Below, piece after piece: positions 9,278-58,998 of a stretch of 64,000 nt of DNA (position 1 is its first letter; every line of letters starts with the position of its first letter). The notes beneath the pieces are model-generated. The model worked only from the letters and a program-made list of their open reading frames with translations. It had not been told where the DNA came from and did not search any database. Both the position numbers and the translations under genes were made by a program. Location: the sequence record OU343167.1; one strand, written 5' to 3'.

Positions 9278-9305
9278 AGCCTCCCTTCGGGGAGGCTTTA
9301 TTTTC
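9278..9305 (+). terminator. Intrinsic terminator hairpin AGCCTCCC-TTCG-GGGAGGCT plus T tract
   Basis: Perfect 8-bp stem, UUCG loop and T run directly after the gp181-like stop. Confidence 0.85.
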
Positions 9306-38140: not shown

Positions 38141-40736
<2,596 letters not shown>

Positions 40737-41252: not shown

Positions 41253-41296
41253 AAATAGCCTGTCCATCGGGACAGGCTATATTCCGTGAGGTCCTG

Positions 41297-41785
41297 ATGA
41301 TTGGATTATTTAAGATGTGGCGGGGTTTCCGTCAAGTGCATTCACTACATCGTGAAGGTACACAAGCGATGTGGTTTAGACTACAAAGACTTGATCCTAA
41401 GCGGAAGTTGTTCAACCCTAATAAAATGAAAGAGTCTATTGCTCTGATTGACTTCTTGACTAATGTTAGTATTGGACTAGGTGATGAATTCACATGTTTC
41501 CTAATCGAGTCAATTGGAGATAATCGTAACTGCGACATTATTGCAAGAGAGCTCCGCGAATGGCATCGTAATACCGATGTATTGGCGAAGATTTTCTCGT
41601 TAGCCTATACGCAAGAAAATGCCGCAGCTCAAAGATATGCAATACTCTTAGCTAAAGAACTCTCGTCTTTTATGCCGGAAAATGTGTACCTATGGTATAG
41701 TCGAGTACGTTTTGCAGTTAGGAAACAATTGCATGAACTCGATAAGGGTAGACCAGAACCGTCACCCTGGGAAGCAAATTTGTAA
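41297..41785 (+). CDS. Hypothetical protein
   Basis: GAGGT RBS. Confidence 0.65.
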   Translation: MIGLFKMWRGFRQVHSLHREGTQAMWFRLQRLDPKRKLFNPNKMKESIALIDFLTNVSIGLGDEFTCFLIESIGDNRNCDIIARELREWHRNTDVLAKIFSLAYTQENAAAQRYAILLAKELSSFMPENVYLWYSRVRFAVRKQLHELDKGRPEPSPWEANL

Positions 41786-41871
41786 GCAACACCCTCAAAC
41801 CGAAATGGCATATTACTCCTTCCGGATAGGATGGGGTAATATGTTGTCTATGCTATTTAAAGGAAATAGGA

Positions 41872-42264
41872 ATGTACGATCATAAAGAAGCTATGGACAA
41901 TATGCATCAACGGATAGCTCTGCACAATGACTATTACATGGATGTCATTGTAGAAGGGATGAAGGTCATTGATGAGAACGGGGTAATCAAAACTATTCCT
42001 TTCTCTCGTAAACTAAAGCCACGTCGAAGCAGTATCTTCCTGAAGAAACGAATTGGGAAGAAACGTCATAAAAAGGAACAAGACCAAAATGACATCCTTA
42101 AATGGATCTATGATCTCAGGATGTATCTGGTCGAAGCAAATGGCGAAGATGAACGTGTAATCATTGACCAATTCAAAAACAAAATGAAGAGTGCCAACAA
42201 CATGTACTTTAAGGCGCCGTTAATGAATCATTACGTCGGTGTAGCGATGGGTGACACACTGTGA
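41872..42264 (+). CDS. Hypothetical protein
   Basis: AGGA RBS. Confidence 0.65.
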   Translation: MYDHKEAMDNMHQRIALHNDYYMDVIVEGMKVIDENGVIKTIPFSRKLKPRRSSIFLKKRIGKKRHKKEQDQNDILKWIYDLRMYLVEANGEDERVIIDQFKNKMKSANNMYFKAPLMNHYVGVAMGDTL

Positions 42265-42408
42265 GAGACATTCTTATTGTCGAATCAGGTAATCCAGGGC
42301 GCGCCTCAGCACTTACTCTAATTGGTTCCATGGTTTTTAAAGACACCACCATACAAAAATAATCCCAGCTTGAGCTGGGTACTATAATGAACTATCGAGG
42401 ACTCAGCT

Positions 42409-42759
42409 ATGCAAACACACATCGATTTATTTACGGTTTACAGAGGGAAGTTGAACTCCCTGTTTACAGAAGAATTGGATCTCACTCTACAACAGGCAAT
42501 AACACGAGTAGAGATCCTCTCCGATAATAAAGTTACAGACGAGTTTAATTGGTCTATCAGTCGGTCAAAAAATATAGATGGTTTGGTTGACACTATCTTT
42601 ATTGTTCCGCGTGATCAACAAGGTATTGTCGTTGCTTATATCGAACTTCAGTATGGTTCAAACCATTTTGAAACCTTTGTAAGTCCAAGTTATCGAACAC
42701 GGTTTATTTCCGTAACATTCGATTTGGAGGTTGATAATGGAACTAACTATACCGCTTAG
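42409..42759 (+). CDS. Hypothetical protein
   Basis: GAGGA RBS. Confidence 0.6.
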   Translation: MQTHIDLFTVYRGKLNSLFTEELDLTLQQAITRVEILSDNKVTDEFNWSISRSKNIDGLVDTIFIVPRDQQGIVVAYIELQYGSNHFETFVSPSYRTRFISVTFDLEVDNGTNYTA

Positions 42760-43069
42760 TTTAGACAATAACTTCGAGCATGTTATTTTTAAATATGGCG
42801 ATCTAACAGACTGTATATCGATACTAGACCGTAAAGGTAGGGTTGACAATACCTATTCCATTACAGTCGAGTTGGATGACTTGTTCGATGATGAATGGTT
42901 AGTTACAATTCAGGCTAAACCGAACTGCCGTCGCTTCCTAAAGTTCAAACGGTATTGGTTTAGATACAACTCAGCAACAGGTCGTTTTGCTGGCGATCCA
43001 TTCTTCATTGCCGGGTTAAGAAAACGTTTTATTCATATCAAAACACCATCTGGCATATCGCTTCCCTAA
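42737..43069 (+). CDS. Hypothetical protein
   Basis: GGAGGT RBS; stop embedded in hairpin 43060-43078. Confidence 0.6.
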   Translation: MELTIPLSLDNNFEHVIFKYGDLTDCISILDRKGRVDNTYSITVELDDLFDDEWLVTIQAKPNCRRFLKFKRYWFRYNSATGRFAGDPFFIAGLRKRFIHIKTPSGISLP

Positions 43070-49001: not shown

Positions 49002-49326
49002 AATCGTAAGTCGTAACCTACTGCAATCCACTGGTGCTTGGGCAGTCGTCCATAACCGTGCTACCATGGACTTCATTGCTATCGGTCATGACCGTAAGGT
49101 TATTAAAGGTATCAGTCTGGGTTATCCGGTGAATGTTGGTGATGTCGATTTCAGTCATGTCGTGGATGTCCCCATGACCTTCGAAATCAGTTATCAAAAT
49201 GATCCTCATCTGGGTCATCCTACTGGTAATATGGAAGCTCTTCTGAAAGCTATTGAAGAAACTACCCATAAAACTCTAGGTCTTCCTAGCAAGCTGACCG
49301 CGGCTTCTAACGATGGAGGTGTTTAA
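48988..49326 (+). CDS. Hypothetical protein
   Basis: Coupled to thyA by TAATG. Confidence 0.55.
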   Translation: MTISEIVSRNLLQSTGAWAVVHNRATMDFIAIGHDRKVIKGISLGYPVNVGDVDFSHVVDVPMTFEISYQNDPHLGHPTGNMEALLKAIEETTHKTLGLPSKLTAASNDGGV

Positions 49327-50756
49327 TGCATCAGTATCTACAACTACTTGAAGATACCCAGAAGTACGGTGTATTTAAAGGTGACCGTACTGGTACGGGT
49401 ACTACCTCTTTGTTCGGTAGACAGTTCCGCTATGATCTTCGTAACGGTAACCTCCCTGTAGTGACCACCAAGAAGATTCATCTTCCGTCGGTTGAAGAAG
49501 AACTCAACTGGATGAAATCGGGGGATACTCGTCTTGAGTATCTCCTGAGCAAGAACGTTACCATTTGGAATGAATGGGTTAAGCCAGGTACTGAAGTATT
49601 TGAAATTGTTTCTGATGAGTGGTTAACCACGGTTGTTCAGAAAAAGTTCAAAAACGTTCCATTTGAAATGCACTTCAGTAATGAGATCGGCGATGTTGAT
49701 TGGAAGTGGCTTGAACCCGAGCAGGGTACCCCAGCTAAACTTCTGATTAATCTGAAGACGTGGGCCGATACGGAACGCTTTGGTCCTGGTCCTAGTGCTT
49801 ATGATTATTACGGCATGGCTCTACGTGTTTATCGCATCACTATTGGCGATGCAAAGATCGTAGTCAAAGACAAAGATGGTTCTCTTGTTGCTTACCGTTT
49901 GATCGGTGGTGACCTTGGTCCTGTCTACGGCAAGACATGGCGTGATATCGATGACGTTCGGATTGTCCCCAAAGTCGACTGGGTTAACTACGAGAAACGT
50001 GGTTTTAAATTCGTGGTAGATGTACCTGGTGAAGACTATACTAAAGACGAGTGTGTTATTCGTCGACGTGTGGATCAGGTTCAGGAACTCTTGTATCAAC
50101 TGGAGCATAATCCGGATAGTCGTCGTCTGATTATCTGCGCTTGGGATCCTCGGTTGGTTGAAGATCAAGCACTGCCTCCATGCCACGCATTTATTCAGTT
50201 CTGGACTCGTGAGCTGTCTGTAGATGAACGAGTGCAAGCGCTAGACCAAACCCAGTTCGAAGCTGATGCTTATCATGATCAGATTAGCGGTGGGACTACT
50301 CGCGGTCAACCTCCGTTCGGTAGTGCTGAACAGGTTAAAGCACATCTGCGTATCTGGCGCGGTGATAAACAGGCTACAGATGAAGCAGTGGTTGAATGGC
50401 TGGATCAGCATGGTGCTCCGAAACGAGCTATCAGTTGCCAACTCTATCAAAGATCGGCGGACGAATTTTTGGGCGTGCCCTTTAACATCATGTTCTATTC
50501 GCTGATGACTCATCAATTGGCGAACCAGTTTAACATGGTAGCAGAAGAGTTCATCTGGACTGGTGGTGACTGTCACATCTACAGTAACCATGAGGAACAG
50601 GTTACTCTGCAACGTTCGCGGAATACTTATCCTACTCCTACCATCCGCTTCAAGCCTGAGGCCAAAGGTAAACCTTTCCTTGATATCACTCGGGAAGATT
50701 ACGAGATTCTGGATTATCAGTTCCATCCGCACATTGCTGGTAAAGTTGCTGTTTAA
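49326..50756 (+). CDS. thyA: Thymidylate synthase A with large insertions
   Basis: DRTGTGT, LGPVYG, catalytic LPPCH, YQRSADEFLGVPFN, GGDCHIY. Confidence 0.95.
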   Translation: MHQYLQLLEDTQKYGVFKGDRTGTGTTSLFGRQFRYDLRNGNLPVVTTKKIHLPSVEEELNWMKSGDTRLEYLLSKNVTIWNEWVKPGTEVFEIVSDEWLTTVVQKKFKNVPFEMHFSNEIGDVDWKWLEPEQGTPAKLLINLKTWADTERFGPGPSAYDYYGMALRVYRITIGDAKIVVKDKDGSLVAYRLIGGDLGPVYGKTWRDIDDVRIVPKVDWVNYEKRGFKFVVDVPGEDYTKDECVIRRRVDQVQELLYQLEHNPDSRRLIICAWDPRLVEDQALPPCHAFIQFWTRELSVDERVQALDQTQFEADAYHDQISGGTTRGQPPFGSAEQVKAHLRIWRGDKQATDEAVVEWLDQHGAPKRAISCQLYQRSADEFLGVPFNIMFYSLMTHQLANQFNMVAEEFIWTGGDCHIYSNHEEQVTLQRSRNTYPTPTIRFKPEAKGKPFLDITREDYEILDYQFHPHIAGKVAV

Positions 50757-50809: not shown

Positions 50810-51217
50810 ATGAACAATATCGAACTTAAACATCAGCTTGAACTCGCCGTAGAACTGATGGGTGTAGACCCTGCTCCACTTAAAATCGGTATCGCTGGTG
50901 ATCGAGTTGATACTGCAACACGATGCGGTATTTTCAATGGGAAAGATCCGGGTAGAGAATTCAGTATCGGTCTTGGAATTGTTAGCCGAAAGCAATGGCT
51001 TGAACTCACTGATGATTCCCTGATTCTCAATAAACCAAATAAAGATCCGGTTGTCATTCCCTATGACGCTATCTATGAGTTGAACATTCCTCTGGAATAT
51101 GGCGAACAAGCAGAAAAAGAAGGTTGGATGTATTACAACCTTCTCGGGAAATCGATGTTCATGTATTTGGATACCGGTAAAGAAGAGAAACTTCAACTAG
51201 CTAAGGTAGAAGCCTGA
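50810..51217 (+). CDS. Hypothetical protein
   Basis: GGAGGT RBS. Confidence 0.7.
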   Translation: MNNIELKHQLELAVELMGVDPAPLKIGIAGDRVDTATRCGIFNGKDPGREFSIGLGIVSRKQWLELTDDSLILNKPNKDPVVIPYDAIYELNIPLEYGEQAEKEGWMYYNLLGKSMFMYLDTGKEEKLQLAKVEA

Positions 51218-52041
51218 TGGATCCACGACACCCAGTTAGCGATGAAATGCGCGCAACGGTAAACGCTGAACTTGACCGAATTGAGAGGAAGTACGGTGTA
51301 AAGATTATTTACGCTTGTGAGTCTGGTAGTCGTGGTTGGGGTTTTGCTTCTACTAACAGTGACTATGATGTTCGTTTCATCTACGTTAACCATCCGAGTC
51401 ATTACGTTCGTGTAGATAACGAAGGTCGTGACACTATCGAGGAGATGGTATCGAAAGAACTCGATCTAGCTGGTTGGAATATCACCAAGACTCTACAGTT
51501 GGCTTATAAGTCCAACCCAACTCTGTTGGAATGGCTAAACTCTCCGATCGTCTATCGGAAGAATCAATGGGACTACGATCTGATTCGTTCCTATGCCATC
51601 AAGCACTTCATTCCTGAATCGAGCTTCATGCATTATATCTCCATGGCCAAACAAACCAAGATGCGATGGCTGTCGGATGATAAGGTTCGAATGAAGAAAT
51701 ACTTCTATGCTTTGCGTCCTCTACTTGCAGCATTGTGGGTAGAGACCAGTCGTGAACATCCACCCATGGTGTTCCATGAACTGTTGCCTATTCTGTCTGA
51801 TCCTACTCTGTACAAGCGTATCCAAGAATTGGTTAACGCTAAGGTTGGAGCTACTGAGCAGGATCTCGTTGACCGTTGCCCAGTTCTTGATCGGTTCATT
51901 GATTTCCATCTGGCTAAAGATAAACCAAACTTCGGCGAATACGAACGTCCGGATATCTACAGGCTCAGTGAACTCGCTTGGCACTTCGTTGATCAATACA
52001 AGTTCGACACGTTCCAGTTACTACATGGTACTGAAAAATGA
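51217..52041 (+). CDS. Pol-beta-family nucleotidyltransferase, RlaP/YcgL-like
   Basis: ESGSRGWGFASTNSDYDVRFIY (GS..DxD), KSNPTLLEWL, KKYFYALRP. Confidence 0.85.
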   Translation: MDPRHPVSDEMRATVNAELDRIERKYGVKIIYACESGSRGWGFASTNSDYDVRFIYVNHPSHYVRVDNEGRDTIEEMVSKELDLAGWNITKTLQLAYKSNPTLLEWLNSPIVYRKNQWDYDLIRSYAIKHFIPESSFMHYISMAKQTKMRWLSDDKVRMKKYFYALRPLLAALWVETSREHPPMVFHELLPILSDPTLYKRIQELVNAKVGATEQDLVDRCPVLDRFIDFHLAKDKPNFGEYERPDIYRLSELAWHFVDQYKFDTFQLLHGTEK

Positions 52042-52978: not shown

Positions 52979-54232
52979 ATGACTACTCAAAATTACGTTA
53001 TGCTGAACGAACAAAATGAATTCCCAATCAAAGGCTGGGTTAAGGGCGTACCGGTTGAAGCCGATGCTAAGCGTCAGCTGAAAAACATTGCGGGACTCCC
53101 GTTCATTTACAAGCATTTGGCAGTAATGCCTGATGTCCATCTTGGGACCGGTGCTACCATCGGTTCTGTTATCGCTACTCGGGGTGCAATCATTCCGTCT
53201 GCGGTAGGGGTCGATATTGGGTGCGGAATGGCCTGCCAGCTGACTGATCTGACAGCTAACGACATGACTCGTGGCCTACAACATCTTCGATATAGAATCG
53301 AGTCCCGTATCCCCCATGGTCGTACTGACAATGGCGGACCTAACGACCGTGGTGCATGGAGTGACTTCAACCTCGTTTACAAGAAACTCGAACCAGAACT
53401 CCAAGTTCAGGTTAAGAAGCTTGAAGAGGAACTGAAGCTCATTGTAGCTAAACACCCCAAACTGGGTAAAGCAGCTAACCGTGCGTTCAACCATGCTGGT
53501 ACCCTCGGCACTGGTAACCACTTCGTCGAAATCTGTCTGGATGAACAAGATCGAGTTTGGATCATGCTCCATTCGGGTTCTCGTGGGATCGGTAACGCTA
53601 TTGGTCGGTACTTCATCGAGAAAGCAAAAGAGGAGATGCGGCTCTACCACATCAACCTGCCTGATCAGGACCTCGCTTATCTGCCGGAAGGTACCAAGTA
53701 CTACAACGATTACATCGAAGCTGTACATTGGGCTCAGCGTTATGCAGCACTCAACCGTACCATCATGATGCGGGCGACCATTGAGGCTGTAGCTGATTAC
53801 ATGGGTCGTCCAATCAATACCAGTCTCACTGCGGTCAACTGCCACCACAACTACGTGTCGTTCGAGAATCACTTCGGTGCGAAAGTATCCGTTACTCGTA
53901 AAGGCGCTGTACGGGCAGATGAAGGCATGTATGGTATTATCCCTGGATCGATGGGTGCAAAGAGCTTCATCGTGAAAGGTAAAGGGAACCGCGAGTCCTT
54001 CTGTTCGTGTTCGCACGGAGCAGGACGTGTCATGTCCCGAACCCAAGCCGCTAAGACTTTCACTCTTGAAGATCATGCTCGTGATACTGCCGGTATAGAA
54101 TGCCGGAAAGACATTGACGTAATCGACGAGACTCCAAAGGCTTATAAGAACATCGAAGACGTAATGGCTGCTCAGGATGACCTCATTGAGATCGTCCACA
54201 CCCTGCGTCAAATTGTTTGCGTCAAGGGCTAA
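52979..54232 (+). CDS. rtcB: RtcB 3'-phosphate/cyclic-phosphate RNA ligase
   Basis: MPDVH, VGVDIGCG, GTLGTGNHFVE, HSGSRG, HHNY, RKGA, PGSMG, SHGAGR, DETPKAYK. Confidence 0.95.
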   Translation: MTTQNYVMLNEQNEFPIKGWVKGVPVEADAKRQLKNIAGLPFIYKHLAVMPDVHLGTGATIGSVIATRGAIIPSAVGVDIGCGMACQLTDLTANDMTRGLQHLRYRIESRIPHGRTDNGGPNDRGAWSDFNLVYKKLEPELQVQVKKLEEELKLIVAKHPKLGKAANRAFNHAGTLGTGNHFVEICLDEQDRVWIMLHSGSRGIGNAIGRYFIEKAKEEMRLYHINLPDQDLAYLPEGTKYYNDYIEAVHWAQRYAALNRTIMMRATIEAVADYMGRPINTSLTAVNCHHNYVSFENHFGAKVSVTRKGAVRADEGMYGIIPGSMGAKSFIVKGKGNRESFCSCSHGAGRVMSRTQAAKTFTLEDHARDTAGIECRKDIDVIDETPKAYKNIEDVMAAQDDLIEIVHTLRQIVCVKG

Positions 54233-54279
54233 CCCGAACGGGGACTTCGGTCCCCATAACTTTCCTAAAGGAAAAATAA

Positions 54280-55167
54280 ATGATTCGAATTACTCAGCTT
54301 CACGGTAACGGCCTGGCAGATCACTACGATTGTCAGCCCTTTAAATTCCCTGGCGGTGAGATCGGTATCAAGATCCCTCTGAAAGATCACAGAAAGAAAG
54401 GTGAACAATTCATAGTCAATGCTTGGCTTCGTAATAGCGATGACATCATGGAACTGTTCCTGGTGTTCAATGCTATTCGTCGTCAACGTATTCGTCCTGA
54501 AATGCACCTGGTTATTGGTTATCTGCCGTATGCACGACAAGATCGTGTTTGCGATGAAGGTGAACCTTTGTCGATCAGTGTGATGACTAGCTTGATCAAC
54601 GCATTGGATGCTACATCCGTGTGTTTGTACGATCCGCACAGCAATGTGTCGCTACCGCTCATCAACAACTGTCGTGAAATCACCCAAGCTGATATTATCA
54701 AGAGCTGGGTATGTGTAGAAGGACAACTTCTGGAAACTCCACAAGAATGGTGGTTGGTTGCCCCTGATGAAGGTGCACGTAAAAAGATCGAAGCCATTGC
54801 AAAAGAGATTGGCGCTGCTGGCGTACTCTACGCTTGCAAGAACCGTGAACTGTCGACTGGTAAGATCACCCATACGTCTTTGTTGAATGCCCATGATGTT
54901 CCTCGGTTAGCAAAGCTGTTGGTTATCGATGACATCTGTGATGGTGGCCGCACGTTCATTGAACTTGCTAAGGTTATCCACGAACAGTGCATCGTAGATC
55001 AACTGGGTCTGTTTGTAACCCATGGTATTTTCTCCAAGGGTTTCGACGAGCTGAACGAATACTACGACTATATCCAGACCACTAACACCTATCATCCTAA
55101 CGCCGTAAATGATTATCGGCATGATGGTGTACGTGACCCGAAATTCTTCTCCCATTCTGTTTTCTAA
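54280..55167 (+). CDS. Prs-family pyrophosphokinase (candidate Adps of NARP1)
   Basis: FPGGE, YLPYARQDR, VAPDEGA, IDDICDGGRTF, THG. Confidence 0.88.
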   Translation: MIRITQLHGNGLADHYDCQPFKFPGGEIGIKIPLKDHRKKGEQFIVNAWLRNSDDIMELFLVFNAIRRQRIRPEMHLVIGYLPYARQDRVCDEGEPLSISVMTSLINALDATSVCLYDPHSNVSLPLINNCREITQADIIKSWVCVEGQLLETPQEWWLVAPDEGARKKIEAIAKEIGAAGVLYACKNRELSTGKITHTSLLNAHDVPRLAKLLVIDDICDGGRTFIELAKVIHEQCIVDQLGLFVTHGIFSKGFDELNEYYDYIQTTNTYHPNAVNDYRHDGVRDPKFFSHSVF

Positions 55168-55183
55168 TCCGAGGATCAAGAAT

Positions 55184-56950
55184 ATGTCTAATGCTCTCTA
55201 TGCTGCAACTGCTACTGACTGCTACAAACCCGGTCATGGTGCTCTGTACCCGAAAGGTACTGAACGTAAATATGCTAACTTCACCCCGCGCTCTGCTAAG
55301 CAGTTCCTGCGGTCGAAGTCTTGCTCTGCGTTCTACGATAACAAAGTCGTTAACTTCGGGTTGCAAGGTACTTGGCACGAACTGGTAGAACTGTGGGATC
55401 GCACCTTCTTCAATCTGCCTCGTGAAATTGCCGTCAAACGTGCACAACGTCGTTTCGACAACATGTGCGGTAAAGGCGTAATCAAACATGAGTGTCTGTA
55501 CAAACTACATGAACTGGGTTACCTGCCTCTGACTGTACTGGCTATTGATGAAGGTGAACGTGTTAACATTGGTGTTCCAACTTTCGTAGTTTACAACAGT
55601 CTGGATGACGATGATCATTACTGGCTGGTGAACTATCTGGAAACCATCGTTAGTTCGTACAACTGGAAAATGATTTGCAACGCAACCATCGCTGCTGAAT
55701 ACCAACGTGTATTGAACCATTATGCTGACCGTACTTGCGATAACCGTGAGCACGTTAAGTTCCAAGCACATGATTTCAGCTTCCGTGGTATGAGTGGCCC
55801 TGAAGATGCAATGCGTTCTGGCTCGGCTCACCTGACTAGCTTCGCTGGTACTGATACCATCCCGGCACTTGATTACGCTGAGATGTATTACGGTGCTAAT
55901 AGCGATACTGAACTGTTGGGTGCTTCGGTTACTGCAACCGAACACGCTGTAGCCACTACCAACATCCTGTACCGTTTGCAAATGAAGATCAACTTCCTCA
56001 AAGAGGAAGGTACTGTGATCACTCCGGAACTGCATGACAAACTGCGACTGGAAGCTGAACGTGACTACATTCTGGAGATCATTCTTCAGAAAGTTCCGGA
56101 AGGCATCATCTCGCTGGTCTGTGATTCCTTCGACTTCTGGGGTGTTATCTCTGATGTTCTCCCGAGCATCCGTGCAGAAATCGAAAGTCGTCTGAAGAAT
56201 GAACTTGGCCTTGCCAGGGTTGTTGTTCGTCCTGACTCCGGTGATCCGGTTAAAGTTATTACTGGCTACATGGCTTACCCGACTGAGTTTGCAGATCGCG
56301 CTGATTTCGAGAAGCACATCGGTGAACTGGGGTCCATTGAGTTCAGTGGCTACGAAGTTGTACGTATCGCAGGCGAATACTACGAGATCAATCACATTGC
56401 TTCGTCGCTCTCCGATTTCCTGTCTGAAAAGACTATCCCGGAAGTTGAAGTACGTGGTGCGATTGAAGTCCTGTGGGATTCCTTTGGCGGTACTGTTAAC
56501 GGTAAAGGCTTCAAATGCCTGAACGAATATGTTGGCCTGATCTATGGCGATTCGATTACTGTAGAACGTACCGAGCAGGTCATGTCTCGCTTGGAACGTA
56601 AAGGCTACGCCTCTAGTAACGTCGTTCTCGGTATTGGTAGCTACACCTATCAGTACAACACTCGCGATACGTTCGGTATGGCCGTTAAAGCCACTGCTGT
56701 TCAGATCGAAGAGGAATTCGTAGAGCTGTATAAAGATCCAAAAGCTGCATCTAGTAAAAAGTCTGCAAAAGGTTTCCTTCGTGTAATTAAAGATGAAGAA
56801 GGTAACTTCGTTCTTGAACAAGAAGCCGGCATGTCTTGGGCGACTCTGGAGACAGAATCCGGCGAATTGAAGCTGTTCTTTAAGAATGGTGAATTCTACA
56901 AGAACGACACGATGGCAAAAATCCGGGAACGGATTGCGACCTCTCTGTAA
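55184..56950 (+). CDS. NAMPT/NadV-family phosphoribosyltransferase (candidate Namat of NARP1)
   Basis: TDCYKPGH, HDFSFRG, ATEHAV, SLVCDSFD, VRPDSGDP, LIYGDSIT, GIGSYTYQ; ATG 55184 with GAGG RBS. Confidence 0.9.
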   Translation: MSNALYAATATDCYKPGHGALYPKGTERKYANFTPRSAKQFLRSKSCSAFYDNKVVNFGLQGTWHELVELWDRTFFNLPREIAVKRAQRRFDNMCGKGVIKHECLYKLHELGYLPLTVLAIDEGERVNIGVPTFVVYNSLDDDDHYWLVNYLETIVSSYNWKMICNATIAAEYQRVLNHYADRTCDNREHVKFQAHDFSFRGMSGPEDAMRSGSAHLTSFAGTDTIPALDYAEMYYGANSDTELLGASVTATEHAVATTNILYRLQMKINFLKEEGTVITPELHDKLRLEAERDYILEIILQKVPEGIISLVCDSFDFWGVISDVLPSIRAEIESRLKNELGLARVVVRPDSGDPVKVITGYMAYPTEFADRADFEKHIGELGSIEFSGYEVVRIAGEYYEINHIASSLSDFLSEKTIPEVEVRGAIEVLWDSFGGTVNGKGFKCLNEYVGLIYGDSITVERTEQVMSRLERKGYASSNVVLGIGSYTYQYNTRDTFGMAVKATAVQIEEEFVELYKDPKAASSKKSAKGFLRVIKDEEGNFVLEQEAGMSWATLETESGELKLFFKNGEFYKNDTMAKIRERIATSL

Positions 56951-56957
56951 TAGACAT

Positions 56958-56980
56958 GGGGAGCTTCGGCTCCCCTTTAT
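56958..56980 (+). terminator. Intrinsic terminator GGGGAGC-TTCG-GCTCCCC-TTTAT
   Basis: UUCG hairpin after the NAMPT-like gene. Confidence 0.85.
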
Positions 56981-56985
56981 GTCAT

Positions 56986-57012
56986 AAAAAAGATTTCAAA
57001 TCTATATTACTC
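56986..57012 (+). promoter_or_regulatory. Putative early promoter AAAAAAGATTTCAAATCTATATTAC
   Basis: Exact TATATTAC; nearly identical to the 12419 motif. Confidence 0.7.
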
Positions 57013-57039: not shown

Positions 57040-57438
57040 ATGTCGAATAAAGACCGTTTAGATGAAAAGAAAGAATGGCAAGAATCGAACCCAGTTCTCA
57101 ATGAGTTCTGCTGGACTGTAAGTCGTACCATGGGCGACGTAGCACGTACCAGTGACGACCGTACTCCCATTGTCGATATCCCTGCTGGAAAGACCTATGA
57201 AATCACTACCAACCAGGAGAACGATATTTATAATGTCGGTCTTGAAACTGGTATGGTGAACTTCGTTGATCACCTACGCGAGAATGGTTACAAGATCATC
57301 TCGCCGGTAAGTGGGCATCCTGTCCCATTTGAGCAAGCTGTAACCTTGGTAAATAGCACAGAGCAGGTCGTACAAGAACTACCTGGTAAGTCTTTCGTTG
57401 AAACCTTCTATGATTATAACTGGGGTGTGAATACATGA
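57040..57438 (+). CDS. Hypothetical early protein
   Basis: GAGGT RBS before ATG 57040. Confidence 0.7.
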   Translation: MSNKDRLDEKKEWQESNPVLNEFCWTVSRTMGDVARTSDDRTPIVDIPAGKTYEITTNQENDIYNVGLETGMVNFVDHLRENGYKIISPVSGHPVPFEQAVTLVNSTEQVVQELPGKSFVETFYDYNWGVNT

Positions 57439-57641
57439 TTGCAGCGCCGCCGCCACCGGGTAAAGTAACGATAGATGGTTTACGTCGAACGTTGTCAGAT
57501 CAGATTGAAGCTGAAATTTCATTGGCTTGTCGTGAAATTGAACTGACAGACATTCGTTATGTAGATCAAAAAGAAATACTCGAAATAGTGCGGCGGTTCC
57601 GTAATGACGTTCGCACAACCATCACTGATAAAGGTAAATAA
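57435..57641 (+). CDS. Small hypothetical protein
   Basis: ATGA overlap. Confidence 0.55.
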   Translation: MIAAPPPPGKVTIDGLRRTLSDQIEAEISLACREIELTDIRYVDQKEILEIVRRFRNDVRTTITDKGK

Positions 57642-57642
57642 A

Positions 57643-58998
57643 ATGACGATTGAAATGGATGAATTGAAACCGATCCGCGAAGGTTTTGGTGTAGTAGAAG
57701 AAACTCGTAAGCTTGCACGCATTGTTGAGATCGATGATGTTGTGAAACACCCTAATGCCGATGCACTGGAATTGGCTATTGTTGGTGGTTGGCAACTTTG
57801 TGTAAAGATGGGCGAATATAAGAAAGGTGATCGCGCTATTTACTGCGAGATTGATTCTCTTCTTCCTCTGGATAACGTTAAGCTCTTCGGTTTTCTTGAG
57901 AGCCGTCGGTCCGACAATCGACGTGTAGACGGTAAAAACTATCATCGTTTGAAAACTATCAAGCTTCGTAAAGAGCTCTCTCAAGGACTACTGGTTCCGA
58001 TTCCCGATGAGTTCAAAGATGAACCCGTTGATACTAACCTGACCCTGAAGCTGGGTATCCTTAAGTACGAGTCTGCTCCTCCGATGGTATCGAAGGCTCA
58101 TGCAGCACGTAACGCTCCGTGGATCGTTAAGCTTGGTGCCAAGCTGATTGGTAATCTGGGTGGCGCTCTGAAACCGTGGCCTGAGATGCTAACTAAGTCC
58201 GATCAAGACCGCATTCAGAATAAGACCGTTGCGTTTTATAACCTGAAAGAAGACGGTGATGACATGGAAGTTACCTATAAGCTGGATGGTAGCTCCATGA
58301 CCGTATTCTGTGTCGATGACAAAGGTATTCGTACTGGCGTTTGCTCGCGGAACTACGAACTCGGAATGGGTGGTGAGAAATGGGGATTCATCCAGCAGCT
58401 TCGGTATTGGGTTGGTAACTTCCTTATCCGTAACCGTAATCTGTTCCGTAAGAAGACCTGGGTTACTCCAGAAGGTAAACTTCGTAATTGTATTATTCTG
58501 CCCCTTTGGACGAAAGGTACCGCTATCGAAGACAATAACTTCGTACGTGTAACTAACCAACAACAGATCATCGAACGTCTTCTCAAGTTCCACAAGAACA
58601 CCGGTCGCTTCATTTCTGTACAAGGGGAACTGATTGGACCATCTATTCAAGATAACTTTGAAGAAGTGGCTGATTACGATTATTACATCTTCAACGTGTA
58701 TGAGGATGGTAATCGTGAACTCCTGCCGGCCGAAGCACGAGCTGTTGTAAAAGACCTTGGTCTGAATTATGTTCCCGTGCTTGACCCGTGCTGGAAACCT
58801 TCTAAGGAAATGTCTGTTAAAGATGTTCTCGCTATGGCTGAAGGTCCATCTGCATTTAAGAACAAGCGTGGATACCGGGAAGGTCTGGTATTTAAGTCCA
58901 ACCAACGTGTACTGTCGTGGAAAGCCATTTCGACTAATTATCTCTTGAAGAAAGAGAAAGAAGAAGAGAAAGCAGCCGCTAAAGAAGACGCTGTATAA
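57643..58998 (+). CDS. ATP-dependent RNA ligase, DRB0094-like (N-terminal tRNA-binding OB fold plus ligase domain)
   Basis: KHPNADALE, YCEIDS N-domain; motif I YKLDGSS, QGELIG, EGLVFK, KAIS. Confidence 0.88.
   Translation: MTIEMDELKPIREGFGVVEETRKLARIVEIDDVVKHPNADALELAIVGGWQLCVKMGEYKKGDRAIYCEIDSLLPLDNVKLFGFLESRRSDNRRVDGKNYHRLKTIKLRKELSQGLLVPIPDEFKDEPVDTNLTLKLGILKYESAPPMVSKAHAARNAPWIVKLGAKLIGNLGGALKPWPEMLTKSDQDRIQNKTVAFYNLKEDGDDMEVTYKLDGSSMTVFCVDDKGIRTGVCSRNYELGMGGEKWGFIQQLRYWVGNFLIRNRNLFRKKTWVTPEGKLRNCIILPLWTKGTAIEDNNFVRVTNQQQIIERLLKFHKNTGRFISVQGELIGPSIQDNFEEVADYDYYIFNVYEDGNRELLPAEARAVVKDLGLNYVPVLDPCWKPSKEMSVKDVLAMAEGPSAFKNKRGYREGLVFKSNQRVLSWKAISTNYLLKKEKEEEKAAAKEDAV

Follow-up and report, generated by a model that had tools for sequence, protein, structure and literature searches.

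Two adjacent genes of Pseudomonas phage vB_PaeM_phiLBG22 (phiLBG22) very probably form an operon of the NAD+ reconstitution pathway NARP1, composed of a Prs-like protein (Adps) that would activate ADP-ribose (ADPR) to its pyrophosphate (ADPR-PP) and a Nampt-like protein (Namat) that would join the activated compound to nicotinamide. They lie in a stretch of 64,000 nucleotides, hereafter the window, which corresponds to bases 186001–250000 of the complete 302,555-bp genome (OU343167.1). Unless stated otherwise, coordinates are those of the window, where the two genes occupy the following positions.

54280..55167, plus strand: adps, Prs-like protein of 295 aa, predicted from family matches and its tree to convert ADPR + ATP to ADPR-PP + AMP
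55184..56950, plus strand: namat, Nampt-like protein of 588 aa, predicted from its matches and its tree to convert ADPR-PP + nicotinamide to NAD+ + pyrophosphate

An earlier reading of the sequence alone (the sequence-only reading) had described a Prs-family gene followed 16 nt later by a NAMPT-family gene and had taken the pair for NARP1 and not for ordinary salvage. The coordinates of the open reading frames (ORFs) and their spacing were borne out: the Adps stop codon lies at 55165–55167 and the Namat ATG at 55184, leaving a spacer of exactly 16 nt. The assignment to NARP1 is supported by the structure match, the clamp motif, the trees, the Prs cut-offs, the synteny and the absence of a detectable nicotinamide mononucleotide (NMN) adenylyltransferase (NMNAT). 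Both predicted reactions, as well as the putative overcoming of NAD+-depleting defences (Thoeris, DSR, SIR2-HerA and SEFIR in the sequence-only reading), are carried over from the homologues.

The pair is already known and adds nothing new to NARP1 biology. Its first gene appears as OU343167_00278, with a start matching that of the Prs-like protein described here, among the entries of Supplementary Table 1 of Osterman et al., and OU343167_00279 is labelled 'Adps-associated' in their Supplementary Table 2 (10.1101/2024.02.11.579819). The same tables also list PS119XW, PA1C, the Pseudomonas chimallivirus Phabio and Yersinia phage phiR1-37 (10.1101/2024.02.11.579819), while phiKZ and phiPA3 are not among the entries listed; as far as these entries go, only some chimalliviruses carry NARP1, namely the PA1C group and Phabio. 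NARP1 is likewise annotated in a 2026 preprint dealing with P. aeruginosa phages, whose panel includes Pawinskiviruses.

The Nampt-like protein groups with Namat

The Nampt-like ORF matches PF04095 (3e-33), PHROG 448 (3e-174) and NCBIfam NF006629 (442 bits), but general libraries of this kind do not separate Namat from Nampt: the Namat of phage FADO and a KVP40-like Nampt both pass NF006629. The pair could in principle boost ordinary salvage, with the Prs-like protein making phosphoribosyl pyrophosphate (PRPP), the Nampt-like protein converting it to NMN and a host adenylyltransferase finishing the synthesis, a NARP2-like chemistry without a phage NMNAT. Such a scheme agrees with the matches of both proteins to the general Prs and NAPRTase/Nampt families, with their public annotation as ribose-phosphate pyrophosphokinase and nicotinamide phosphoribosyltransferase, and with the PRPP-dependent synthesis of NMN by the Namat of SpβL1, roughly half as fast as by human Nampt (PMC12774641). 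We nevertheless judge it improbable in view of the motif, tree and profile results below, the behaviour of the Prs-like protein on curated models and the outcome of the NMNAT searches.

The best matches among solved structures are 9W5X and 9W5W (4e-102, 346 bits), in which SpβL1 Namat is bound to nicotinamide and to NAD+, respectively (PMC12774641); mammalian (human/rodent) Nampt is matched at 1.5e-44. Two other entries, PDB 9KE8 and 9KEO, deposited as 'nicotinamide phosphoribosyltransferase', match phiLBG22 Namat at 1.6e-94; since this is far better than the match to canonical Nampt, their generic name probably conceals another Namat. The Nampt-like catalytic core is conserved, from the Phe/Tyr that stack on nicotinamide, an Asp and the catalytic His to the Arg and Asp of the RPDSG motif. 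Eight residues of the phiLBG22 protein, D12, Y14, F198, R201, D224, H254, R349 and D351, occupy invariant columns of the alignment and correspond to D13, Y15, F189, R192, D215, the catalytic His, R306 and D308 of SpβL1 Namat.

Namat differs from Nampt by a selectivity clamp helix, GS-X-Phi-X-Phi-X-Phi-TRD, whose aromatic residues, at the third and seventh positions of the motif, form stacking contacts with the adenine of either ADPR-PP or NAD+ (PMC12774641). This helix is recognized in the phiLBG22 protein.

56636..56668, plus strand: selectivity-clamp helix motif GSYTYQYNTRD (aa 485–495), matching the Namat signature

Its distribution was followed in 88 sequences, which comprise phiLBG22, FADO, ICP1, PaoP5, seven Nampts from phages and the 80 relatives closest to phiLBG22 in IMG/VR, an exact duplicate among the latter entering a single time. 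A clamp motif of the GS[YF] type is present in all 81 Namat-side sequences, 79 of which, in addition to phiLBG22 itself, come from loci that also contain an Adps-like ORF, whereas the seven Nampts without Adps, including that of KVP40, whose enzyme has been reported as a Nampt, all carry GGG/GGK...RD (GGGLLQ..DRD or a variant of it; GGGLLQQLDRD in the KVP40 type). That the phiLBG22 protein lacks the GGGLLQ..DRD motif of validated Nampts and has the adenine clamp helix in its place speaks against salvage. The maximum-likelihood tree divides the set into the 7 Nampts and the 81 Namats with full support (100 in the Shimodaira–Hasegawa-like approximate likelihood ratio test, SH-aLRT), and phiLBG22 lies deep on the Namat side with FADO and ICP1, as sister to a protein from a 314-kb viral contig (63% identity) in a 19-member clade that contains the PaoP5 Pakpunavirus-type protein. 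Hidden Markov models (HMMs) of the two sides, built without phiLBG22 and its two nearest relatives, scored it at 665 bits (Namat) and 258 bits (Nampt), a difference of 407 bits that again disfavors salvage; the control values (Namat/Nampt) were 710/333 bits for FADO and 292/668 bits for KVP40.

The Prs-like protein behaves as an Adps

The Prs-like ORF matches Pfam PF13793 (Pribosyltran_N, 6e-10) and PHROG 619 (4e-80). With this protein none of the 11 NCBIfam Prs models reaches its cut-off; the highest score is that of TIGR01251, 101 bits against a cut-off of 113. On this model the Adps enzymes of ICP1 and FADO score 98 and 97 bits, respectively, and E. coli Prs 423 bits. The former enzymes are validated, as ICP1 Adps was shown to produce ADPR-PP (PMC13586617) and FADO deprived of both NARP1 genes does not replicate on cells equipped with a defence (Osterman et al. 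2024). The Prs-like protein thus fails the curated Prs models in the same way as validated Adps enzymes do, contrary to what a PRPP-producing salvage enzyme would lead one to expect. Of the 309 positions of the TIGR01251 profile, it matches no further than 273, 36 short of the end that E. coli Prs reaches, and its tail of 24 aa is unrelated to the Prs tail. Loss of the C-terminal α11–α12 module of PRPS has been called a defining signature of Adps (PMC13586617), and the truncated profile match fits such a loss in phiLBG22.

In the acceptor groove of the PRPS-like fold and at its catalytic Lys, R86, H120, D163, K187, D217, D218 and D221 of the Prs-like protein correspond to R87, H121, D161, K185, D212, D213 and D216 of ICP1 Adps. 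The first six (R86 to D218) are invariant columns in the alignment of phiLBG22, ICP1, FADO, PaoP5 and E. coli Prs. Two elements deserve separate mention.

54838..54840, plus strand: Lys187 codon, aligning with Lys185 of ICP1 Adps, the essential catalytic β-hairpin Lys (PMC13586617)
54928..54957, plus strand: PP loop DDICDGGRTF (aa 217–226), equal to the consensus of Adps homologues

The corresponding loop of E. coli Prs reads DDMIDTGGTL. Across 37–40 Adps homologues, D217, D218 and F226 never vary, and the same holds for G223 and T225 within the viral-contig subset. In the tree, a long branch, supported at 100, lies between 76 Adps-like proteins and nine Prs of gammaproteobacterial origin, and phiLBG22 falls within a 68-member group that contains both validated enzymes, those of ICP1 and FADO. 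When set against Adps and Namat on one hand and Prs and NadV on the other, both phiLBG22 proteins are accordingly found on the NARP1 side, as the sequence-only reading had it.

Gene linkage, selection and the source phage

Of the 80 viral relatives closest to phiLBG22, 76 encode an Adps homologue upstream of Namat on the same strand; in two of the four exceptions the match lies at the very end of the locus, with no upstream DNA to inspect. The gap between the two genes among relatives is at most 50 nt in 40 cases and exceeds 300 nt in 19. Osterman's criterion for NARP1 is the presence of Adps and Namat within 10 genes, a distance that includes the adjacent, same-strand arrangement of phiLBG22. 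Comparison with PA1C gives ratios of nonsynonymous to synonymous substitution rates (dN/dS) of 0.056 for Adps and 0.072 for Namat, and both genes are under strong purifying selection. The clamp helix differs between the two phages by the single change Y487F, and many of the other Namat substitutions cluster in the second of two insertions described below.

The segment 54200–57000 of the window is 100% identical to vB_PaeM_phiLBG22 (OU343167.1) and 89–99.7% identical to seven other records of P. aeruginosa jumbo phages: BRkr, HHBS36_1, PS119XW (two records), phiHQ, PA1C and HPP-Temi. The gene pair is found in 8/8 of the related genomes. PS119XW is the type of the genus Pawinskivirus, and PA1C is regarded as a nucleus-forming phage (PMC10643120). 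Outside the window, at genome positions 41270–43015, phiLBG22 encodes a chimallin/PhuN homologue that is 100% identical to PA1C ChmA over 582 aa and matches the solved phage-nucleus shells of phiPA3 PhuN (4e-259) and chimallin (4e-197). Since it encodes chimallin, phiLBG22 is presumably a nucleus-forming jumbo phage of the chimallivirus type.

Search for an NMN adenylyltransferase and accessory genes

Phage enzymes of the Nampt clade pair with an NMNAT. The sequence-only reading had recognized none in the window; this holds, and the search was extended to the whole genome. With six queries (E. coli NadD and NadR, Ccr29 NadM-Nudix, nt-1 NatV, ICP1 NadR-like and CfP1 NatV-like), no tblastn match with E < 0.19 and no phmmer or HMM match with E < 0.3 was detected in the 302,555 bp. 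The motif GxFxPxHxGH was likewise not found genome-wide. As a positive control, the adenylyltransferase HMM picked up the members of its family, at 1e-49 to 1e-76.

The absence of an NMNAT supports the sequence-only reading but is not diagnostic taken alone, and it was downgraded as proof of NARP1 since ICP1 has NARP1 plus a NadR-like gene. The NadR-like protein of ICP1 (MW794144.1, 12551–13591) is 36% identical to E. coli NadR (2e-60). Because ICP1 possesses both, NARP1 and a NadR-type route can coexist in one phage.

Domains of the accessory proteins known from extended NARP1 loci, Macro (Adpp) and RyR (RyDEP, PF02026), gave no Pfam match in a scan of plus-strand ORFs from 44 to 64 kb, and the phiLBG22 locus appears to represent the plain two-gene form. 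The NAD-dependent ligase that the sequence-only reading had connected with the pair is indeed encoded by the phage, outside the operon.

38604..40736, plus strand: NAD+-dependent DNA ligase (LigA type), an NAD+ consumer, given as context

The start annotated for this ligase in PS119XW yields a protein of 680 aa, ~30 codons shorter than the phiLBG22 ORF.

Points against the assignment and a possible change of specificity

Several observations weigh against NARP1. The 80 relatives were picked as the nearest to the query, which makes the trees a biased sample. The Prs outgroup is also narrow, as scanning contigs with E. coli Prs gave only gammaproteobacterial Prs of at least 80% identity, and we therefore gave more weight to the curated NCBIfam cut-offs than to the Adps tree. 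The loss of α11–α12, read from the profile match, is putative. Phe92 of ICP1 Adps, which contacts the ADPR adenine, is replaced by Cys91 in phiLBG22; at this position Cys is the family consensus and ICP1 the exception. The other adenine contact, ICP1 Phe18, falls within an N-terminal stretch that has no reliable alignment, and these aromatic contacts are ICP1-specific and a weak family criterion. Namats keep some PRPP-dependent NMN synthesis, so that ordinary salvage chemistry may persist as a side activity. As to expression, the 23 runs listed are nearly all DNA, and the single RNA run among them, a wastewater metatranscriptome, contains 0.07 of the sampled words. The last point concerns the selectivity-clamp loop (SCL) of Namat.

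55292..55351, plus strand: SCL (aa 37–56), 20 residues compared with 8–9 in KVP40-type Nampt

An Arg is expected at the third position of the SCL, or a Lys or Tyr followed by a stacking residue at the fourth. The phiLBG22 loop reads S37-A38-K39-Q40-F41, with Lys third (Arg40 in SpβL1), Gln fourth and the aromatic residue fifth.

The loop also bears on a second alternative, in which the two enzymes have drifted towards a different substrate or function, perhaps another derivative of ADP-ribose or a nucleotide used in signalling, or in which one of them is inactive. New specificity would then be carried by the long clamp loop, lacking the expected aromatic residue at its fourth position, and by two insertions, aa 261–296 and 363–419, which make the phiLBG22 protein ~90–100 aa longer than SpβL1 or FADO Namat; that many of the substitutions relative to PA1C fall in insertion 2 would agree with this view. 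Both insertion sites are, however, hot spots of length variation in many Adps-linked relatives, the 593-aa Felixounavirus-type proteins included, while the catalytic and clamp-helix residues are all retained and dN/dS values of 0.06–0.07 speak against decay. We regard such drift as highly improbable. The insertions and the long loop were also considered as a possible novelty and rejected, as the same sites vary in length across Adps-linked relatives. Bas63 belongs to the genus of the Felixounavirus-type proteins, and its NARP1 genes were targeted for knock-out by the discoverers of NARP1 (Osterman et al. 2024).

Predicted role of the operon during infection

Under the NARP1 assignment, the pathway would come into play when a host NADase defence cuts NAD+ into ADP-ribose and nicotinamide during infection. 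Adps would transfer the β,γ-diphosphate from ATP onto ADP-ribose, at the 1'' hydroxyl of its terminal ribose, to form ADPR-PP, and Namat would swap the diphosphate for nicotinamide, yielding NAD+ directly without recourse to an NMNAT. The two proteins would be translated from neighboring cistrons that have separate ribosome-binding sites, in a unit ending at a terminator-like UUCG hairpin. Restored NAD+ would sustain phage replication, including the activity of the phage's NAD+-dependent DNA ligase.

The phage-nucleus shell shields DNA and not soluble metabolites, and NARP1 could therefore answer NADase defences. Avs5 is a SIR2 NADase that targets jumbo phages, and a rebound of NAD+ without a known mechanism has been described during Avs5 defence (PMC12931631). 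We consider it conceivable, although rather unlikely, that NARP1 is the specific answer of the chimallivirus lineage to jumbo-phage-directed NADases of the SIR2 type, such as Avs5; if so, the NAD+-dependent ligase inside the phage nucleus would also depend on NARP1. At a practical level, the Pawinskiviruses (PA1C group), which are therapeutic-type P. aeruginosa jumbo phages, would carry a putative broad-spectrum counter-defence against NAD+-depleting immunity, and the presence of NARP1 would be useful for host-range prediction and phage choice.

Layout of the locus

The signals flanking the two genes were read from the sequence as follows.

54240..54255, plus strand: upstream UUCG hairpin GGGGAC-UUCG-GUCCCC, between the RtcB and Adps genes
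54268..54272, plus strand: Shine-Dalgarno-like AAGGA, 7 nt ahead of the Adps ATG
55171..55175, plus strand: Shine-Dalgarno-like GAGGA within the 16-nt spacer, 8 nt ahead of the Namat ATG
56958..56985, plus strand: downstream UUCG hairpin with TTTATGTCAT tail, terminator-like end of the two-gene unit

A longer in-frame Namat ORF from 55109 would overlap the Prs-like gene. The ATG at 55184 is the best start, because the annotations of PS119XW and PA1C, as well as the entry in Osterman's table, begin there.

The upstream hairpin has a predicted energy of -15.7 kcal/mol over a 55-nt stretch (z = -3.0 relative to shuffled sequence), has no T-rich tail and was not scored as terminator-like. In the absence of such a tail, it is probably a transcript-stabilizing or processing element and not a full terminator, and transcription from RtcB may read through it. 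The downstream stem-loop GGGGAGC-UUCG-GCUCCCC (56958–56975) reaches -19.7 kcal/mol (z = -4.5) and is the only one of the two to combine a T-rich tail with a terminator-like score. Both hairpins proposed by the sequence-only reading to bound the pair are therefore present, although they are two of 13: GC-rich UUCG hairpins occur 13 times on the plus strand of the window, compared with 0.36 expected from shuffles, and twice on the minus strand. Given this number, they are general punctuation between units and not particular to the NARP1 pair, and they look like the standard terminators or transcript punctuation of the phage. Examples are found at 9278, 12388, 17478, 31174, 33777, 38057, 45059, 50764, 56958 and 63025; most of the hairpins in the window are followed by a T-rich tail, and the stems at 56958 and 63025 are identical.

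Just past the downstream hairpin, at 57003–57010, lies the motif TATATTAC of phiKZ-type early promoters. It was dropped as a candidate promoter because it is not enriched, with four occurrences in the window compared with 2.5 expected. Sigma-70-like sites are no commoner in the window than by chance.

Neighboring genes

The pair is flanked by RNA-repair genes, an RlaP-type nucleotidyltransferase (51217–52041) and RtcB (52979–54232) on one side and an RNA ligase with a PHA02142 OB domain (57604–58998) on the other, forming an RNA-repair cluster around NARP1. Together they could constitute a local counter-defence island directed against tRNA- or RNA-cleaving defences. A conserved module of NARP1 and RNA repair was considered and rejected: an RNA-ligase homologue lies within 3 kb in 2 of 90 related loci, and RtcB or RlaP in none of the 90.

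RtcB of PS119XW (L001:17829-20033) has 734 aa, with an insert of ~317 aa placed exactly at the conserved Cys of VDIGC/GMA (aa 82 in phiLBG22, the slash marking the site). The insert begins with Cys and ends in ...TGN just before Cys, and it looks like an intein; RtcB of phiLBG22 and of PA1C (1254-nt gene) have no such insert. The thymidylate synthase ORF at 49326–50756 encodes 476 aa, ~200 aa above the usual length, and its Pfam match falls into two stretches, from which it appears to hold an internal insertion. Directly past the NARP1 hairpin, two ORFs of 132 aa (57040–57438) and 68 aa (57435–57641) gave no Pfam or PHROG match.

Comparison with known NAD+-restoring systems

NARP1 has been described in Bacillus SpβL1 and FADO, Escherichia Bas63, Vibrio ICP1 and mycobacteriophage DyoEdafos (10.1101/2024.02.11.579819; PMC12774641; PMC13586617; 10.64898/2026.05.28.727677). 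The phiLBG22 locus has in common with them the same two genes in the same order, on the same strand and closely spaced, the same Namat clamp helix and catalytic core, and the same catalytic Lys and acceptor-site residues of Adps, as well as an Adps that remains sub-threshold on the Prs models, as in ICP1 and FADO. Sequence identity to the FADO and ICP1 enzymes amounts to 26–33% for Adps and about 43% for Namat. The insertions and longer clamp loop of phiLBG22 Namat recur in Pakpunavirus- and Felixounavirus-type relatives and are absent from SpβL1, FADO and ICP1. Unlike the phages listed, phiLBG22 is a chimallin-encoding jumbo phage of 302 kb with P. aeruginosa as host.

Two extended forms of NARP1 contain the same core. 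NARP1-AP of Vibrio phage Gary adds the Macro-domain phosphatase Adpp to Adps and Namat (10.64898/2026.01.28.702374), and the RyDEP-extended NARP1 of DyoEdafos likewise includes Adps and Namat. In phiLBG22, by contrast, nothing lies in the 16 nt between the two genes, and neither Macro nor RyR was found in the 44–64 kb plus-strand scan; by analogy, phiLBG22 would not be expected to use aRES-made ADPR-1''-phosphate.

With canonical Prs/PRPS and cellular Nampt, the phiLBG22 proteins share the fold and the core chemistry, in which ATP donates a diphosphoryl group and nicotinamide attacks an activated ribose. They depart from them in the PP loop (DDICDGGRTF instead of the DDMIDTGGTL of E. coli Prs), in the TIGR01251 score (101 versus 423 bits), in the unrecognizable C-terminal module of Adps and in the weaker match of the Nampt-like protein to human/rodent Nampt (1.5e-44) than to the Namat structures (4e-102). 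NARP2 of Vibrio phage KVP40, composed of Nampt/NadV and Nmnat/NatV, has the Nampt-family fold, the catalytic core and the NAD+-restoring role in common with the phiLBG22 system, but its Nampt carries GGGLLQQLDRD in place of the aromatic clamp helix, has a short loop and falls on the opposite side of the split; it has no Adps neighbor and works with an NMNAT, of which phiLBG22 has no detectable counterpart. NARP3 of phage Bas30, which couples a PnuC-like transporter to a NadR-like enzyme (PMC13464706), serves the same purpose of restoring NAD+ against SIR2-type defences with enzymes unrelated to the phiLBG22 pair; no NadR-like protein was detected genome-wide, and PnuC was not searched for. By the NadR and NMNAT searches, with PnuC outside their scope, NARP2 and NARP3 are absent from the phiLBG22 genome, and it is the plain Adps–Namat form of NARP1 that its gene pair most closely resembles.

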